Below are positions 5,505-50,700 of a stretch of 64,000 bases of DNA, piece after piece; the stretch's first letter is position 1; each line of letters starts with the position of its first letter. The notes below the pieces were generated by a model. It did no database searches and was not told the origin of the DNA. It saw only the letters and a list, made by a program, of their open reading frames with translations. Origin of the DNA: Anthoceros angustus (Eukaryota > Plantae > Anthocerotophyta); contig VJWM01000025.1 in assembly GCA_010909165.1 (NCBI GenBank), forward strand, positions 2,170,001 through 2,234,000. Reading direction: 5' to 3'. A program made the position numbers and the translations under genes.

Positions 5505-6965
<1,461 letters not shown>

Positions 6966-8799
6966 TATTTGAGATTGTAGATTGCAAGTATGTGGCAAAA
7001 ACCTAAAGTCCCATTCTCGTTCGGCTTTTTTTTCAAACTGGACCACATTGCGCAAACTTATGCGCGCACTTACATCTAAGCAGGTCTCCAACATCCGCAA
7101 TCATTGCGGTGTTGGGCGATATCTAAAACATTTAGAGTTTTTAGGGCTTGCTGTAATTCTGGTGCGCAAACTTGTTTGCGCACCAACCTTTCATTCATTC
7201 TAGTCAATCCTATGACTATACTCTCGCTCCGAGAATTTTACAGGACTTTGTTCCTTAGACATTGGGACAATAATGTCTTCTTTGGCCGGATGCTCTTAAT
7301 CCACGTCTAGTGCGAAAATGAGAGTGGCATGGTCTGCACTTAGAGCTGGGCCCACGCCAAATGTCTCAAGATTCAAAAGATGCAAAAGGTTCTCACTACT
7401 AGTTCAAAGTTTTAACCACTAGAAAAAAAGATGAGGGTTAAGTAAAGATAAGAACATATTCACATTAGGGAGCTGCACAAAAAAGGTTGAAAACGTCGAA
7501 AGGAACCCTTTAAAACAATAAAAATATCAATACAAATACAAAAAAATCAAAAAATTGTCAAAATTTTAGAGCAAGTGCGCGCACTTGCCTCAAAAAACTG
7601 GACTTTTTGGTAATTTTTTTAGGGGTGTTTAGGGTTTTTTTAGACTTTTTGCTCTTTTTTTCTTTGGATGAACCGTCTGGGAATGCACTAGGAGGCATGA
7701 ACCATTTGGGTTCATGCTCCTGTGCCCTTCTTGACCTTGGTGCGCAGGCGCACACCCGGCCCCTGCCCCTGGTGCATGCACTTGTTCACCCACCCCTCGG
7801 CATGTTTGATGATAACCCAGATTAGGTCATCGTAGAAAGACGGAAACAAAGAATAAAAGGGATAGGGTGTTCTTCGTCGCATTAGGGCATAGGATAGGAA
7901 TATAAGAGTGGTCTAGGTGAACCTCCGCCGATGTCTACTTGTTATTTTGTCGGGAGTTCCGACATCCTCGCACCGCCAAAAGGACATGCTTCCCATTAGA
8001 AGATCATTTTCGCGTTCTTTTGCAGTGCATGCACAAGTTTGCACATAAGCGTTGTTTAGGCGCACTTATGCGCCTAGGCCCCCGGTATACAAAACATACA
8101 AAACCACACAAAATGCGTAAACTACGGACATGACGAAATTATGGAACAATGAGGTCACTGGCCCTTCATCACACCGACTAAATCTCCATGGACTGAGTAT
8201 AGGCGCCAGTGTAAATGACTCGAGAAGTGGTGCCGAGGAATGAAACCGATGGATGAACACCTACAAAACCAACAAAACCAAACCAACTTCGCCCGCGAAT
8301 AGGGTTGGGATTTTTTCCAAAACCCCTTTTGACAGGAGAAACCCCTTTCTAAACAGATGCTGTTATACCCTAATGCTAGACGGCCAACAACAGACGAAGA
8401 GGACAAAGCTGACTCCTCCGATTCAAAGTACTTTTCTTCAGACAACACTTCTGCAAAAGGGCTGAGCTGGATATTGCCATCCCCGCTTGCCACTGGCTTA
8501 GTAGAACCCCTGGCACTTCCCGCCAGAAGGAGTCTTCATGTTGAAGTCCAGGGATTGAGGCCGAACCGGGGATTCCTCCGGTCTCCCTAAAGCGGCACCA
8601 GTACCCACTCTGGAGGGAGGGTTTGCCGTACGATCTGTGACTGCTGCACTTTGTGGGAGAGCACCGAGACGCAGACTCGGCGCCCGCCCGAAAGCAAAGA
8701 TCAGAGCCCCGGTGGGGCCCTGTGCCATCATGAGATGTTCGATCACACGGCTATCCCGCTTGCCGAGCCACCGTAAAAGATAATTGATGTACATTTCAT

Positions 8800-42391: not shown

Positions 42392-45300
42392 CTATCGAGT
42401 CAAGTACGTGTATGAGCCCAAGCTACGCCTATAGTTGATCAGCAACCTTTGTGCTTCTTCTATTGTGAGACACCCACTAGCTACGGCATTTTCTGTCTCC
42501 CGGCGGAGAGCTTCCATCATATCCTCTCCCACATGTTGAACCGTCTGAAGCAGTTCCTCCATAGTTTGGCCCCTAATAACATGCTCAACGATGTATTCTC
42601 CGTTCTTGTGGTTGTTCGACAGGCCATTACTAATGTTCAGCCTCTTTGCCCTCACATGCACTACGTTTGTCATTCCAAATAGATTGTGGGAGCTTCCCAT
42701 CACCTCCTGCAGTGTCGAATCGCCAGCGAGTTTAGTTTTGAACGGATTGCAAGTCAGACGACCAAACATAGTATTGAATAACATACCTGATAGACCCCGC
42801 CCAGAAATAAGCCGAAGTAGTAGAATTCACCTTTGATAAGTTCATGCACCTGCAGAACACTGGTGGACTCACCGTTTGGACCTATGAACCGGTTGATCTT
42901 CCCATCGCTGTCACAGGTCAAATCCGCAAGTGTTGCCTGTACGCCTGGTTTTTCATTTAGGCGTTGCAAAGGCATGACAGGGAAAAGTTGACTGATGGCC
43001 CATGAATCTGGAGCAGAACGGAATACAGACATATTCACATGATATACAGCACCAAAGGACTTGCTCACAGCTTGCAGCTCATCAGGCAGCTCATTCCCCT
43101 TTGAGTACTTGACAGCTCGGTGGCACACAGCGTCATAGAGAGCATCTGCTTGTGCCCTTTGCTCCAAACTCAGACAACCAAGTTTAAATAAACTCCAGGC
43201 TTCAGACTTGAATTGCTTGGCATCATTATATGCTTCTTGGAAGTTGAATTCGTCCATGGTGTTATATACCTCGAAAAATGTTGACAATAGATAGTCACCT
43301 GCTGTTCTCTGCATAGCATCGATCGGCCCTCGCTGAGTGGGACTGGAATTTTCACCTGTTCCATTTTGTGACCTGGCCTCCCCTGATCCAGCACATCTCA
43401 CTAAATTACTCAAGTTCTCCAAAGCCGCAGCTTCAGAGCGCTGTGACGCACTCAGTACATCGAACACCAACACTGAATGATGTGATGCCAACGCACGACC
43501 GCTTTCTGAGATTATCACTGGCTGAGCCACCTGCTTCAACAAACAGGCATCCGCCAGAGCTGCTACAATATCGTTTGCATAATTCTGAAACGACAATGTC
43601 GATTAGTCAAAAACCTGCTAGGCGAGACAGGTTTTAGCAAACTGCAACTAAGAACCCATTCTACAAGCTGCCTCGTACCTGCATACTATAGTTGGTCGAT
43701 GCTTCTGACCGTCCTTTTGTGCCATCATAATCAATGCCCAATCCACCCCCAACGTCAATGTAACCCTGTTCACACGAAAACAAGGAAAGAGATACTATCC
43801 TTTACAACTCAAGGACTTTCATGGCATTTCAGGAAAAGCTGCCCCTCAAGTTGGAGTTCCAATCTCATGGATGAACTGACCATAGCAGCACCAAGCAAAG
43901 CAAGCTCGCAATACATGTGGCTGGCTTCACGCATTGCATCCTTGATTATAGAGATAGATGGGACTTGCGATCCTATGTGGAAATGAAGGAGTTGCAAACA
44001 GTCAAGCATGCCTTCCTGTTGACAAAGCACAAACTTCAGTAAGAACACATCCGATGACAAAGTAACAGGTTCGTAGCTAATGCCACAATGTGCGGGAATT
44101 CACCTACCTGCTTCAATCTGTAGACAACCCTGACAATCTCATTCGTTGTAAGGCCAAACTTTCCCCTATCACCAGAGGTTTCGCCCCAGTGTCCATCATG
44201 CCTTACACTAAGTTTTGCTCTCACACCAATCAAGGGCCTAATCCTTAGCTTCTTACTAACGTCAATCACAAGGTCCAGCTCCTCCATCTGCTTCGAGGGG
44301 CATGATAACGTGAGCACCTAAAGCTATAAGATGCCTACGATAGGAGAAGACTATGAACTACAAAGCACCTACACGCCGGTGCTGTGCCCATGCCTGAGAA
44401 CTCATATGACGTCATCTCCAGCTCGATGTTACCTGCTCAAGGACAATGACTCCATTCACCCCAAGCTGTCTCGAGAGGAGGACACTTTCAATATACACCT
44501 GATCCTGAAAGATCAGTGTGGAGAAGATCAATTTTCACCGCAATGCTCCAAAACTTTGTGCCACATTGTCAGCAGGGAAGGGCCCAAATGACCACTTCTA
44601 GCAAGCATCAAGCTTACCCAGATGGCAGAATTTCTGAAATGCACTGAAAGAAAGCCACACCTTGTATCCATTACAGATGAGAAGGGCGTCTTGCTTTCCA
44701 CGCAAGTTGGCAATGGCGATGAGAAGTTCAGCTTTGGACCCGGCCTCGAGGCCAAATCTGCACTGCTGGCCAAACTTCACAATGTCCTCAAGAAGGTGCC
44801 GGTCATGATTACATTTAATAGGAAAAACACCTTGAAAATGCCTCTGCAAAAGCAACAATAGTGTCAACCATATAAAAGGTCATGGAACTACACAAAGCTG
44901 TCCACAAGGCTCCGAGTCACACAAGCTTGTGACATACTTGATACCCAAACTTGGCTATAGCAGAGTTAAAGCAGTCTTGAAGTTGCTGGATTCTATGTTG
45001 CACGATGTCAGGAAATCTTATCACCATAGGAAGCTGCACATTTCTCTTCAGCAGAGCACCAATTAGCTCAACAATGTCGAGCTCATCAGCTTCTGCCAGA
45101 GAGCACACGTTGTCAGGATCGGCAGCAGCGAGGTCTCTCCCTCAAACCCACCGTCACCTTAAACCCTAAACCCTGAGGGGTCGCAAAAACTCAACAATAA
45201 GCTTTAAGGTGTCATCTTACGATCACCACCACCCAGAGGATGAACGCAGACATTGCCAGCGGAGTTGATGCCAAAGTAGGGGGCTCCCCAGCCTGCAACC

Positions 45301-45683
45301 CTGTAAAGCATGGAGCTGTCGGCAATCGTCCACGCACCCTCCTCCTCACACCCTGCCCGGGAGGATCTTTCTGCACCGTTGCGGTTATTGAATTGGGTGG
45401 CAATCCCAGGTCCATCTCGCAACCTGGAGGCAAGATTATTCAGGCTCTGATCTCCACCCTTGGCAGCTGTCTTCCTGGCTTCCTTTCGCAACCTGCCAAC
45501 ATGCACTGCCAACAGCGTGCTTCTCAGGCGATTGAGCCTTTCCCCGCTTTCCTCAGCGGCGACGCCAGCAAAGTCCTTGGATGCAAGCTCCTTGGAATGG
45601 CAGAACGCTCCTTTTTTGGATCCATGGATATCCGGACGAGGGATTGCGGGACCCAGATCATGTATCAGCCGCAATCGATTCAT
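42392..45683 (-). CDS. ADC: Arginine decarboxylase, 9 exons / 8 introns
   Basis: [29 protein letters not shown] (PLP Lys), [79 protein letters not shown]. Confidence 0.96.
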
Positions 45684-46032
45684 GCTGCTGACAAAGAAGG
45701 ATGTGCCACAGCTCTGACCGCTGTATTCATCACAGACGCTTCAAATTCACGAGTGGAAAGGAATGGCCAAACAACTATGTACATACATACATACTCGCCT
45801 TGCACCGGGTTTCTTTCAGTTATAAATAACTAGGGTGCTTACAATTGAGAACTTCAGGACTCCATGTCCTACTTCAGGACGCCCTTCTCTTACAATTGAG
45901 AACTTCACCGTCACAGGAAGCTGGCCATGCTTCTAAAGCCGGCCATGCTTCTAAAGCCGGCCATGCTTATACGAGATAACCCTCCGAAAAGAGAGAGAGG
46001 GAGTACATACATTGTGACAAAGCTCTGTCACA

Positions 46033-46113
46033 ACTGCTAGCCGTGCTCTTGGAACTTGGGTCACACCTGCTAGCCGTGCTCTTGGAACTTGGGTCACACC
46101 TGCTAGCCGTGCT
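46033..46113. repeat. ~2.5 x 33-bp tandem repeat containing the isochorismatase stop codon; 18-bp repeats nearby at 45839-45907 and 45920-45968
   Basis: CTGCTAGCCGTGCTCTTGGAACTTGGGTCACAC repeated; GCCGGCCATGCTTCTAAA and TTACAATTGAGAACTTCA repeated. Confidence 0.9.
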
Positions 46114-47152
46114 GTTGGTCTGCTCCCCACTCAGCAACGGTAGGTGTCTTGATGCCAATGTTGCGCATGTCCAGAAGATTGGCTGCACAAGGGAAAGGGT
46201 AGAATTACTCAGAGACCTGTGAGATGAATAACTGCGCGAGACAGTGCTATGTGAGGCACGGGAAATTGCAGCACAGCGGGATGCAAGGGATCTGCACTAC
46301 CGGCATGAACTTCCGGGGTACTCGCAGCAGTAGCATCTGCCAGCACAGAGACGTACTCATAGTCCAGAGCAACAGCATCAAATGCTGTGGCACGGATGCA
46401 GTTCGGAGTTTGAACTCCTACACAGTCCACCAAAAGCCAGGTCATCACAGGTTCAAACAAAGGTTCTGAAAACAGTGTGCTACAAAACAAGAGGGAAATT
46501 CATACAGGGATGACAAGTGCCTGTCAGAATACACACCAGCAACCACAATCCTCTTCACTTCAAGACGGCGAAGAACGCGGTCCAAATTGGTCTCAAAAAA
46601 CGCACTAAACCTATACTTCACAACGACTGGCTCCTCCGGCAGAGGATCGAGACCCTCCACAAGAGCAGCACCCCTGGTTCCCTTCACCGTAGGCCCTGGT
46701 GTCTCGCCACCGTACAAGCACACGCGAAAGACCTCAACATCCCTGCCACTAAGATCGTGCTCTCGCTTGACCTGCACATAGATAAGGTGGCAGATTTCCT
46801 CTCTGTCATCCAACCAGGGCAAGGGCCAGGGCAAGAACAAATCTGCACAGCCACAAACAGAAGGGACAAATCTGCTCACCCAGACAACCACGGCACCCCG
46901 CTGTCGTGCTATGGAAACTGCCTTCGCCACGGCAGGCACTATGGCCAGACCTCCGTTCACACGAAGAGGACCAGGATAGATGAAGTCATTCTGCAAACCA
47001 GCTGCATCACAGGCTCAGAGCCATATCCACAACAAAGCAGCTGGAGCTCAAGCTTGAGACATGTACAACAGAGATTCCACCTGCATGTCCACCACTAGCA
47101 GTGCGGTAGACTTCCATTCACTACTGTCCGCCAAAACCTCGGTATCAGCCAT
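46103..47152 (-). CDS. Isochorismatase/cysteine-hydrolase family protein (At3g16190-like), 5 exons
   Basis: MADTEV..TALLVVDMQ|NDF..|REHDLSGRDVE..KYRFSAFFETNL..|GVQTPNCIRATAFDAVALDY..|ANLLDMRNIGIKTPT; D-K-C triad residues present. Confidence 0.92.
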
Positions 47153-47213
47153 GGCAGCTGAATCTAAGATGAGCCTACAAGGAAGGTGAACTCCGCACGC
47201 CACAGCACGGAGA

Positions 47214-47414
47214 TCAGTGCTCTGAATCCTGGCCGCTCTTGCTCAACTTGGAAGCCATGCCGTCCACGAACAGGTAGACAGCAAAAGCGCCGACCGCGAT
47301 TCCCAGCCCCGGCGTCGCACGTTTCAGGTTGTTGCTCAGCAGCGGATGGTAACGGTACAGATTGATCGCCTTGAAGAATTCCGCGGTGCGATTGCCTGCT
47401 CCCGGATCAGCCAT
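47214..47414 (-). CDS. NDUFB3: Mitochondrial complex I subunit B12 (NDUFB3), single exon
   Basis: TAEFFK..YRYHPLLSNNLKRATPGLGIAVGAFAVYL matches the plant B12 pattern EFF..W/YR.HP.L.N..R.A.PG.GI..GAF.VYL. Confidence 0.88.
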   Translation of the reverse strand: MADPGAGNRTAEFFKAINLYRYHPLLSNNLKRATPGLGIAVGAFAVYLFVDGMASKLSKSGQDSEH

Positions 47415-47734
47415 AGCTCGTCACCTCGCTTCCCCGCGGCCGCTGCCTTCTCCGGACAAACTGAGCCGTCGTAACAAAGACGCCTTAACTGTTACAGTTA
47501 CGTTAACAAGGGAGCGGGTCCACATTCCAACGGCCACATTCGGCCGTGTTTGAACTTGTCCGCTCTCGCCAGTCCCCAGTCCAGGATTCCAGTCCACTGG
47601 AGGAGCATCTGGAGCCAAGTTGCGCGGTGCATTGCCATCGCACATTTTCTTCCAATTTGTGGACAGCCTAGTTGTTTGTGCTGTGAATTGTTCTTCCCTG
47701 CGCGCATTGGGATCAAGAATTGGAGACGAGAAGG

Positions 47735-50700
47735 ATGATGTCCCCGAGGCTCATGTCCCCCAGGCACACTCCAGGCCGCTCCAGATTTGCACCACCCACT
47801 CCCACAAGAACAGGACAGGGCTCCAAGGTGCGGGTTGTGGCCCGAGTGCGGCCTTTCTTGGCATCGGAGATCGAAGGGGCGCAAGGGGCTCCTCAATCGT
47901 GTGTGACAGTGGTGAGAAGTGCTGATGATGGCGAGGTGGCTCTGCAAATTGCGGACTCCAAAACCAGGTGAAGTGGACATGAGGAAGAAAGGAAGGCTGG
48001 GGATTTCATGGCTTGATTGCCAACTGACGAGGAGGGGTGGGTGCGTGCAGCCGGGGTGAAACCTACAAGCTGGACATGTGCTATGGTGATCAGGCAAGGA
48101 CCGATGAGATTTTCCGTACCGAGTTGGAGCCCATGCTGCCAATTCTGTTTCGTGGGTGCAATTCAACGGTGTTTGCCTACGGTGCCACAGGCAGTGGCAA
48201 GACGTACACCATCCAGGTGAATTGAGCTCTCTTCTTCTTTCTTGGTTCTTTGAGTGGGCTGTTGCTGTTGGTAGGGTATCTCAGACACTTTCTTTGCCTC
48301 GGGATGGATTCAGGGAACTCCAGCCCGACCAGGGCTTATGCTGCTAGCTGTGGCGAAAATCCTGGAGGCAGCTGGAAGAGTGGAATGCAGTGTCAAAGTT
48401 GCATACTATGAGGTGTACATGGACCGGTGCTATGACTTATTGCAACCAAAGACAGAAGTATCTGTTTTGGAAGATCCAAGTGGCCGCATTCAGTTGCGTG
48501 GTCTTGCTCAGGCAGGTGTCAGCCCGAAGACAGTCTTGAGCACTGCATCAGTGGGTGGGGCTTATGAATTTCGTTTTGAACGCATATATTTTATGCTGAG
48601 CAGGTTGAAGTGAAGACCGTGGAGGAGTTCCAGGCGACTTTTGCAGATGGGTGTGCAAGGCGAAAAGTTGGACAAACAGGACTTAATGATGCTTCAAGCC
48701 GAAGCCATGGAGTTTTGATGGTTACTGTCTCCAGTGGGACTGATGGTTCGCGCACAGTTGGAAAGCTTAATATGATTGATCTGGCAGGTGAGGATCTGTT
48801 GTGTCGGTCTGTTAACTTGGCTGGAAGGATGCGTAGTTAGCTAGCTATAACTATTTCAGGTGATGTTTGCAGGAAATGAAGACAATCGTAGGTCAGGCAA
48901 TGAAGGTCTCCGCCTTCTTGAAAGCAGCAAGATCAATGCTTCTTTGTTTGCCCTATCCAATGTGATCAATGCACTCAATGCAAATGAGGCCCGAGTTCCG
49001 TACAGGGATAGCAAGCTGACTCGCATATTGCAAGACTCTTTGGGGGGTACAAGTCGGGCTATCATGATCGCATGCCTGGTATTGACAACATCTGCTGCTT
49101 GGGCGCCATTCTGGACCTGTTCACTTCTTGTTTGTGACAGGATGGCTATCTTAACTGCAGAACCCAGGTTCATACCAGGAAGCATCTCAAACTTTGAGCC
49201 TTGCCGCCAGGTCAAGGCAAATTGTCAACCACAACATTCTTGACGCAGAGAATGAGATCTTGGAGGCAGGACGAGAGGTGAACATGGAAGCAAAGCTGTT
49301 AGCTTGGAGAGAAGCTAAGGGGAAGACCCCGATCAAGTGCATTCCAGTATCCAGCCCTGTGCAGCCAAAAGGTCATTGTCCCTCTCCTGATAGAGGTCGC
49401 TCTGTCCGCACACTTGCTACTCCAAAGAAAAGGTCAGAGTTATCTCTCTTACCCCCTGAGGTTCCAGGATTGCTCCTGTGCAGCTGGCCACCATTTTGGC
49501 GGCTTTTATGCTCTTGTCATACCTATGAGCGAAGTCGCAATTGACAATATGTTGTGTGTAGATCCTTACTCTTTCCAGGACAACGTGATCCAGTACTGGT
49601 AAGCTTCAGTCAAGCATGTCAGGAAATAAAAGTTAAAGCAGTTCTCTTTCTGACAATGCTTTTGGTGTTTCTTCAGGGCACAGCTGAGGAGAGGAAAGAT
49701 GAGGCAGCACAGCCTGCTGCTGACCCGCCTGCTGATCAACTGTGCACCAAGTCAGGGAATGAGATTGCCGTTTTCCACGATGAAAGGGATCAAGAGCCCC
49801 AGGAAGATTCTAGTCAAGGGGCAATTGAGCTGCCACCCAAGCTGCCGTTCAATGGTACGCCTATACTTTCCTTGTATCCTCCTCTGCTGGATCGTGGTGG
49901 AGTACAGCTAACTGATGTTTGGAATCTGTTGCGCAGAGCAAGAAGCTGAAAAGGAGAACATGGTTCAGGAAGTACCAGCATGGACGACGCCCAACAGACT
50001 GCCAAGGACTCAAACCTCTCCACCTCTCAGCGAAAGGGTGCGTGAGATCAAGAACCAGCTAATCAATCTGTCCCCCAGGCATTTGGCTCCTTTGAAGCTG
50101 GAAAAGGCCGTCTCCACCATCAGTATGGATCCCCCCTTCTTGGGAACCTCTGTGGAGTGCAGCTCAGACACATTAAGTACACCCACGATCAAACAGAATC
50201 CCCTATTTGCTGGCACACCGCTTGAAGAATGGGACATAAGCAGCCGTGGCTGTGAGGTAAGCAGCGAATCAATGTTATCCTTTTCTCTGGTGCTTCTTTG
50301 TTCTATGCCTTGTCTATTCTACTAAATTGAAACGTGTAATCCGTAGAGAACATTGCTGGAGAAGTATCTTCATGTGCTCAACACTGCTACCAGGCAGGTT
50401 TCCTTGACTTTCCTTTTTCAGATTTCCACCTGACAGTCTTATTTCTCTTCTCCCGAGCAACGCATGCACATGCAGCAGTTTCCCTATCGTTTGCTTATTT
50501 CTGCTCTTCCTTTGTGTCCACAGGGATGAGTTGATGGCATTGAAGGTAAAAGCCGCGAACCGACTTGAGAATATAATGGTTTCTTCTTGAAACAGCCAGC
50601 ACGCGCTGAGCATGTGACAACTGTGTTCTTCCAGGGCATTGGGGAGAAACGAGCAAATCGTCTCCTAGAACTCCGTGCAGAACAACCGGAACCTATACAG

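Follow-up and report, generated by a model that had tools for sequence, protein, structure and literature searches.

This analysis concerns a 64,000-nucleotide (nt) stretch of the genome of the hornwort Anthoceros angustus (contig VJWM01000025.1, positions 2,170,001 to 2,234,000), hereafter the window. On its minus strand, a short open reading frame (ORF 1) for NDUFB3, an accessory subunit of complex I, lies immediately upstream of the gene for an isochorismatase-family hydrolase (ORF 2). The best explanation is probably that the two form one transcription unit, giving a conserved bicistronic nuclear mRNA. Both reading frames are real and conserved, and they lie together on one spliced contig in three organisms (RNA runs X1, X4 and X10); the same pair is found in a second hornwort (L012, a genomic Logan contig of 8.9 kb) as well as in the liverwort Marchantia polymorpha (locus L030). 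We infer from these observations that both frames are carried by single molecules, that most of either protein would come from this two-ORF mRNA, and how translation of ORF 2 would take place. The parts of the unit are as follows, a caret marking a splice point.

47436–47457, minus strand: approximate 5' end of the RNA (transcription start region), from contig ends

47415–47435, minus strand: short 5' leader of ORF 1, free of ATG and containing the donor-like GAG^GTGACG, from sequence and contigs

47214–47414, minus strand: ORF 1, NDUFB3/B12 accessory subunit of complex I, 66 amino acids (aa) plus TGA, from PF08122, PDB 7aqw_k and alignments

47153–47213, minus strand: inter-ORF spacer of 61 nt, with acceptor-like CCTTCCTTGTAG ending at 47175, from sequence and relatives

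47081–47152, minus strand: exon 1 of ORF 2, isochorismatase-family hydrolase of the At3g16190 type, from RNA joint 46990/47081 and an N-terminus that matches orthologues

46880–46990, minus strand: hydrolase exon 2, from RNA joints and a tblastn match to L012 at 76%

46537–46771, minus strand: hydrolase exon 3, from RNA joints, PF00857 and 79% identity to Nothoceros protein P0192

46301–46417, minus strand: hydrolase exon 4, with the TPNC cysteine motif, from joints seen in X4 and X10 and from PF00857

46103–46182, minus strand: coding part of hydrolase exon 5, with TAG stop at 46105–46103, from RNA contigs

45850–46102, minus strand: hydrolase 3' untranslated region (UTR), with two tandem repeats and an AT-rich patch near 45850–45870

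The RNA evidence consists of assembled contigs from four runs. Such contigs drop minor or rare isoforms, and a contig spanning two genes is not proof of a single transcript molecule. Run X1 shows 0 differences from the window and so comes from the same organism; runs X4 and X10 represent two relatives, B and C, which are about 92% identical (about 8% of positions differing) and were compared by applying their reported differences to the window sequence. Contigs from which the hydrolase introns have been removed, and which therefore derive from RNA, run unbroken over 47081–47435, that is, over exon 1, the spacer and the whole NDUFB3 frame, and unbroken two-ORF spliced contigs of this kind are present in X1, X4 and X10 alike. 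The X1 contig ends at 47435, X10 carries 21 further homologous letters, and only an unspliced contig of low depth, X2, continues upstream of about 47457. The RNA thus seems to start about 20–45 nt before the NDUFB3 ATG, the contigs ending 21–43 nt upstream of it. Depth in X1 is 112.8 for the 5' contig, of which NDUFB3 and the spacer make up 44%, and 207 for the 3'-UTR unitig; the latter lies in a repeat present twice in tandem, so that each copy accounts for about 104. Since the two depths are similar, rough as they are, little RNA carrying NDUFB3 alone need be invoked.

ORF 1 runs on the minus strand from an ATG at 47414 to a TGA at 47216–47214 (201 nt). Its product matches Pfam PF08122 (NDUF_B12) at 28.9 bits, above the curated cut-off of 22.7, and aligns over its full length with the Arabidopsis complex I chain NDUFB3-A (7aqw_k, E=3.9e-12, residues 9–66); 8e73_B3 and 7a23_t, which are NDUFB3/B12 chains of solved plant complex I structures, match it likewise. 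Both the conserved core FF..R.HP...PGLGIA..F.VYL and the size typical of NDUFB3 (about 60–75 aa) are present, and 15 invariant columns are common to the product and to NDUFB3 proteins of a hornwort, a moss, a conifer and a legume. The frame is intact in relatives B and C, where 6 codons carry synonymous changes only and 5 amino acids are changed; the stretch that aligns to the conserved membrane segment shows synonymous changes only. To judge from these alignments and from those of the hydrolase below, ORF 1 is NDUFB3 and ORF 2 is an isochorismatase-family hydrolase, with matches far beyond chance.

Neither the exact NDUFB3 protein of the window nor a near-identical one was found in a collection of 15 billion proteins, which suggests that the frame is hidden in an annotated 5' UTR; it is probably unannotated in the public gene sets for its lineage. 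A word-index protein search with NDUFB3 returned two distant matches only, and an exhaustive HMMER search returned 52 relatives, with no hornwort sequence in usable context among them. No fused NDUFB3–isochorismatase gene model occurs among the longer NDUFB3 relatives. Two gene models of other organisms, P0024 (130 aa) and P0031 (127 aa), join NDUF_B12 to LSM or, weakly, to DTW, and may be other cases of NDUFB3 lying directly upstream of an unrelated gene. In Physcomitrium, RNA contigs of 2.5–2.9 kb (L008–L011) carry NDUFB3 about 950–1300 nt from the contig start and are long for a 71-aa protein.

The hydrolase begins with an ATG at 47152 in the context GCC ATG G. It has five coding exons, 615 nt in total (204 codons and the stop), separated by four introns whose GT..AG joints, of 90, 108, 119 and 118 nt, are seen in RNA contigs. 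Searched one by one rather than as a joined protein, the exon-bearing ORFs match PF00857 at 70.1 and 31.2 bits (curated cut-off 27 bits). The best matches are plant proteins of 187–214 aa, one of them named 'putative inactive nicotinamidase At3g16190', and the gene is orthologous with the plant At3g16190 group, with the same four intron positions in Marchantia. The nearest named full-length hydrolase is that of the hornwort Nothoceros aenigmaticus; identity in exon 3 is 79% with Nothoceros and 62% with Marchantia, and few changes are seen in relatives B and C. A metagenome scan with exon 3 returned only distant, apparently bacterial-type isochorismatases at 39–50% identity. Members of the isochorismatase superfamily have an Asp-Lys-Cys catalytic triad; the motifs VVDMQ (exon 1), VKYRFSAF (exon 3) and QTPNC (exon 4) are present, as read from the sequence rather than mapped on a structure. 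The name nicotinamidase is a database label, and it is the sole basis of the idea that nicotinamide adenine dinucleotide (NAD) links complex I to this hydrolase. In its 3' UTR, a 33-nt tandem repeat occupies 46027–46118 (2.8 copies) and an 18-nt repeat 45918–45968 (2.8 copies); relatives B and C lack 66 nt, or two units, of the 33-nt repeat, whose copy number therefore varies between species.

Conservation of the pair extends beyond relatives B and C. The plant from which L012 derives shares 90% identity with Nothoceros in exon 3. The genes for kinesin, NDUFB3 and the hydrolase are arranged on L012 as in the window, with a 253-nt spacer separating the last two. In Marchantia polymorpha, an NDUFB3 ORF lies 646 nt upstream of the hydrolase MPTK1_6g01980 on the same strand, and the flanks differ, with neither kinesin nor decarboxylase within 5 kb of the pair. 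The synteny of NDUFB3/B12 with At3g16190 orthologues, which the first-pass annotation suggested examining, is seen as adjacency in both plants. Judged by gene order, what hornworts and Marchantia keep is the NDUFB3–hydrolase pair and not a wider block, and the pairing seems to predate the split between hornworts and liverworts. Elsewhere, the NDUFB3 loci L001–L006 of a relative have no isochorismatase within about 4 kb, and the hydrolase transcripts of three other plants (L013–15, L036–41 and L042) are single-gene transcripts with short leaders that lack NDUFB3; an ORF at the 5' end of L036–41 turned out to be adapter plus leader. A lookup found no RNA contigs for the NDUFB3 proteins of L012 and Marchantia. 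The Marchantia annotations disagree with one another: one has a 381-aa model that ends exactly at the NDUFB3 stop (L031 1–4354, GCA_001641455.1), another has NDUFB3 alone and a third does not call NDUFB3.

How might one such RNA yield two proteins? A promoter in the gap of about 250 bp that is common with a divergent kinesin gene would start the RNA some 20–45 nt upstream of the NDUFB3 ATG. From there it would extend through NDUFB3, the spacer of 61 nt and all five exons of the hydrolase to a polyadenylation site near 45850. NDUFB3 would be made from the first AUG. Some ribosomes would get as far as the hydrolase AUG, having either passed over the first AUG while scanning or terminated at the stop 61 nt upstream and then reinitiated; alternatively, initiation at Met53 could be followed by reinitiation 61 nt later. 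Neither an ATG nor an A-rich hexamer resembling a poly(A) signal occurs in the spacer, which is equally long in relatives B and C and has acquired no ATG there. The two starts are separated by one ATG (in frame, Met53 at 47258) versus 3.97 in dinucleotide shuffles (P=0.04). Its fold is no more stable than those of shuffled sequences (z=-0.13), which leaves no case for a structure resembling an internal ribosome entry site. A fusion protein made by read-through is excluded, because the two ORFs are in different frames (their starts are 262 nt apart) and an in-frame TAG at 47177–47175 follows the TGA.

Several observations weigh against a bicistronic messenger. The start context of ORF 1, with G at -3 and G at +4, is not weak, unlike that of algal bicistrons. 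Given the protein sequence, only 0.5 out-of-frame ATGs are expected in ORF 1, so the depletion of ATGs between the two starts is weak evidence. A 66-codon ORF followed by four spliced introns is expected to elicit nonsense-mediated decay in plants (PMC9768141), and yet contig depths suggest that the two-ORF RNA is abundant despite this expectation. The hydrolase is absent, within about 4 kb, from one (L007) of the two Physcomitrium NDUFB3 loci, and there is room for both a terminator and a promoter in the spacers of L012 and Marchantia. Finally, the X4 and X10 contigs extend about 750–800 nt past 45889, where they probably enter the next gene, an arginine decarboxylase; the RNA contigs of relatives B and C may either overlap the 5' part of that gene or read through into it. 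Such run-on into a neighbour indicates that merging of neighbouring transcripts can occur at this locus.

These last points lend themselves to an alternative in which two independent, overlapping single-gene mRNAs were merged by the assembler, an NDUFB3 mRNA ending in exon 1 or intron 1 and a hydrolase mRNA starting inside or just before the NDUFB3 ORF. A two-gene contig does not by itself show a single transcript, X4 and X10 seem to behave in just this way toward the arginine decarboxylase gene, most Arabidopsis read-through pairs also have start sites of their own (PMC9768141), and the 646-nt Marchantia and 253-nt L012 spacers could carry their own signals. Against it, the window leaves just 61 nt between stop and start; the first-pass annotation had placed the NDUFB3 stop (47214) at this distance from the hydrolase ATG (47152) on the same strand, and the coordinates are confirmed. 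Moreover, the sequence from 47214 to where intron 1 ends shows no A-rich poly(A)-like element, 47153–47414 contains no TATA-like patch, the 5' contig and the 3' UTR have similar depths, and it is the pair, but not its neighbours, that hornworts and Marchantia conserve. We regard two overlapping mRNAs as unlikely, while taking the possibility seriously.

The first-pass annotation had proposed a different relation between the two genes: some transcripts would lose a 250-nt intron in the 5' UTR of the hydrolase (donor 47424, acceptor 47175) and with it NDUFB3, so that the hydrolase AUG would come first, whereas retention would give NDUFB3. The motifs on which it was built are there. The donor-like GAG^GTGACG (G at 47424), which precedes the NDUFB3 ATG by 10 nt, and the acceptor-like CCTTCCTTGTAG ending at 47175 are both confirmed in the sequence. 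With an acceptor-like site defined as YAG with at least 10 of 12 pyrimidines upstream, and a strict donor as AG^GTRA, the window leads one to expect by chance 0.10 acceptor-like sites per 61 nt and 0.024 donors per 43 nt. The true donors of the hydrolase gene are much looser (G^GTG/A), and the joint chance of both motifs is about 0.002–0.03, depending on the strictness required of the donor. The motifs are therefore better than chance, yet just moderately unusual. L012 has a donor-like GTAAGG 16 nt ahead of its NDUFB3 ATG and, beyond the stop, an AG preceded by a pyrimidine tract.

The proposed intron itself is unsupported: the main RNA keeps the ORF, and the 47424>47175 junction appears in no contig of the three organisms (contig depths 113–327), nor anywhere in the contigs of the four runs, in which the four other joints of the same gene are seen. 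Splicing would leave an exon 1 of only about 11–33 nt, and the segment removed (250 nt, 58% G+C) contrasts with the four real introns (90–119 nt, 44–52%). As for conservation of these splice signals in bryophytes, a donor-like site is present in L012 whereas Marchantia has no comparable donor upstream of the ORF, and an L012 transcript spliced in this way would still have four upstream ATGs ahead of the hydrolase. The NDUFB3 stop does lie within a CTGAT, as had been pointed out; its likeness to a branch point is explained by conserved His-stop codons, since GAGCACTGATCT is identical in Marchantia. That both ORFs begin ATGGCTGAT is also correct, and we treat it as coincidence: ATGGC is a common start context, and relatives differ, the L012 starts being ATGGGGGAC for NDUFB3 and ATGGCTGCT for the hydrolase. 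Because contigs drop rare isoforms, a minor spliced form could escape, and we keep a splice switch as a distinctly improbable explanation rather than discarding it. Of the original idea of one transcript and two unrelated proteins, the two-ORF RNA accords with the spliced contigs of three organisms and with the conserved pair, and the splicing mechanism is not supported. It is highly improbable that the RNA serves in effect only as an NDUFB3 mRNA whose long tail goes untranslated, with the hydrolase coming from a rare separate transcript or never being made: second ORFs are indeed seldom translated in Arabidopsis read-through bicistrons (PMC9768141) and the ORF 1 start context is strong, but the hydrolase ORF is intact, correctly spliced and conserved (in exon 3 as far as Nothoceros and Marchantia), shows few changes in relatives B and C, and is preceded by no out-of-frame ATGs.

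Returning to a single bicistronic unit, comparison of the spacers offers a possible origin for the acceptor-like motif. The Marchantia spacer contains two strong splice-like sites: a donor, CTG^GTGAGG, 4 nt beyond the NDUFB3 stop codon, and an acceptor at L030 4909 whose pyrimidine tract is long. The candidate intron between them (551 nt) contains all 13 ATGs of the spacer, and the remaining 95 nt or so have none. Similarly, the four ATGs of the L012 spacer (6876–7128) all fall between a GTAAGG (6930) and acceptor-like sites (7033, 7099), and two copies of TTGTA(A)G flank a segment that is missing from the window. In short, low-scoring alignments, the left half of the window spacer matches L012 up to the TTGTA at 6927–6932 and the right half matches it from the second TTGTAG at 7094 to the hydrolase ATG; the pyrimidine tract of the window aligns in the same short, low-scoring manner with the Marchantia acceptor tract. 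The acceptor-like motif of the window thus aligns with boundaries of the candidate inter-ORF intron in relatives. We infer that the ancestral unit had an inter-ORF intron, most of which would have been lost in the lineage of the window, and that the acceptor-like motif may be a leftover of it. L012 and the window could differ in this way because the window's lineage underwent a deletion, or because that of L012 gained the segment as an insertion or an intron.

We may also hypothesize, tentatively, that the pair has been an obligate two-protein messenger since the ancestor of hornworts and liverworts. NDUFB3 would then be made only as first cistron, and hydrolase output would be set by the ribosomes that skip or finish ORF 1. 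Here the ancestral inter-ORF intron would have been lost, with the acceptor-like motif as its fossil, and a minor splice form that skips NDUFB3 could add control. This fuller scenario is possible, though we would not put it higher than that.

The unit is bordered by two other genes:

47720–49243, plus strand: start of the coding region of the divergent kinesin gene, from Pfam PF00225 and an X1 contig that starts at 47690

42392–45683, minus strand: arginine decarboxylase gene, following the hydrolase on the same strand, from Pfam Arg_decarb_HB, Arg_decarbox_C and a weak Orn_Arg_deC_N

About 235–285 bp separate the transcript starts of kinesin and of the NDUFB3 unit (region 47436–47719), and the same head-to-head arrangement is found in L012.

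Bicistronic nuclear mRNAs are known from green algae, where they combine a short ORF 1 with a short, ATG-poor spacer and leaky scanning, and where they were established by long reads, proteomics and mutagenesis (PMC7896298, PMC11291117/PMC11892635). The present pair resembles them (Gallaher 2021, PMC7896298; Duenas 2025, PMC11892635/PMC11291117) in its short ORF 1 (201 nt), in the few ATGs before ORF 2, in a spacer of 61 nt against algal medians of 40–183 nt, and in joining unrelated proteins with a small mitochondrial one as ORF 1. It differs in the ORF 1 context, which is not weak here, and in being known from contigs, whereas the algal cases rest on long reads and proteomics.

Among land plants, CDC26-TTM3 is a known bicistronic transcript (Lorenzo-Orts et al. 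2019, via PMC9768141, PMC11062462, PMC11291117). As described in these citing papers, it too is a single nuclear transcript in which the ORF of a small conserved protein precedes that of an unrelated metabolic enzyme; distantly related plant lineages retain the pair, and to annotators the first ORF looks like a regulatory upstream ORF (uORF). By the same accounts, both of its ORFs were shown to be translated and the transcript to be sensitive to nonsense-mediated decay, whereas the pair described here is known from contigs and sequence, and consists of a complex I subunit and an isochorismatase-family hydrolase found so far in hornworts and one liverwort.

Read-through transcripts that undergo intergenic splicing are known from Arabidopsis; these are mostly minor and targets of nonsense-mediated decay, and translation of their ORF 2 is rare (PMC9768141). 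Marchantia and L012 are alike in that they appear to have an inter-ORF intron, which could remove the termination signals of the first gene; unlike the Arabidopsis cases, the two-ORF form is here the assembled and relatively deep one, and the lineage of the window is without a spacer intron. Alternative splicing of the 5' UTR that removes a uORF has also been reviewed (PMC11062462). Splice-like motifs do flank the upstream ORF here, whereas the contigs show no junction, only a very short exon 1 would be left, and a whole gene for a conserved protein, not a regulatory uORF, would be cut out. The NDUFB3–isochorismatase pair was not found in the searched supplementary lists of the green-algal bicistron work, nor in the searchable literature, where no paper mentions the Marchantia gene identifiers of the pair. 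NDUFB3–isochorismatase is most likely a new gene pair of an established bicistron type.

To our knowledge, very few nuclear mRNAs of land plants are confirmed to be bicistronic, the textbook case being CDC26-TTM3. If our reading is true, NDUFB3 and the hydrolase would be a second deeply conserved land-plant pair, with a complex I subunit as first cistron, and the algal habit of placing small mitochondrial proteins ahead of unrelated enzymes would persist in bryophytes. The pair would flag a systematic annotation gap, NDUFB3 being hidden in an annotated 5' UTR, and would offer, in Marchantia and in transformable hornworts, a tractable test case for the translation of second ORFs and for escape from nonsense-mediated decay.

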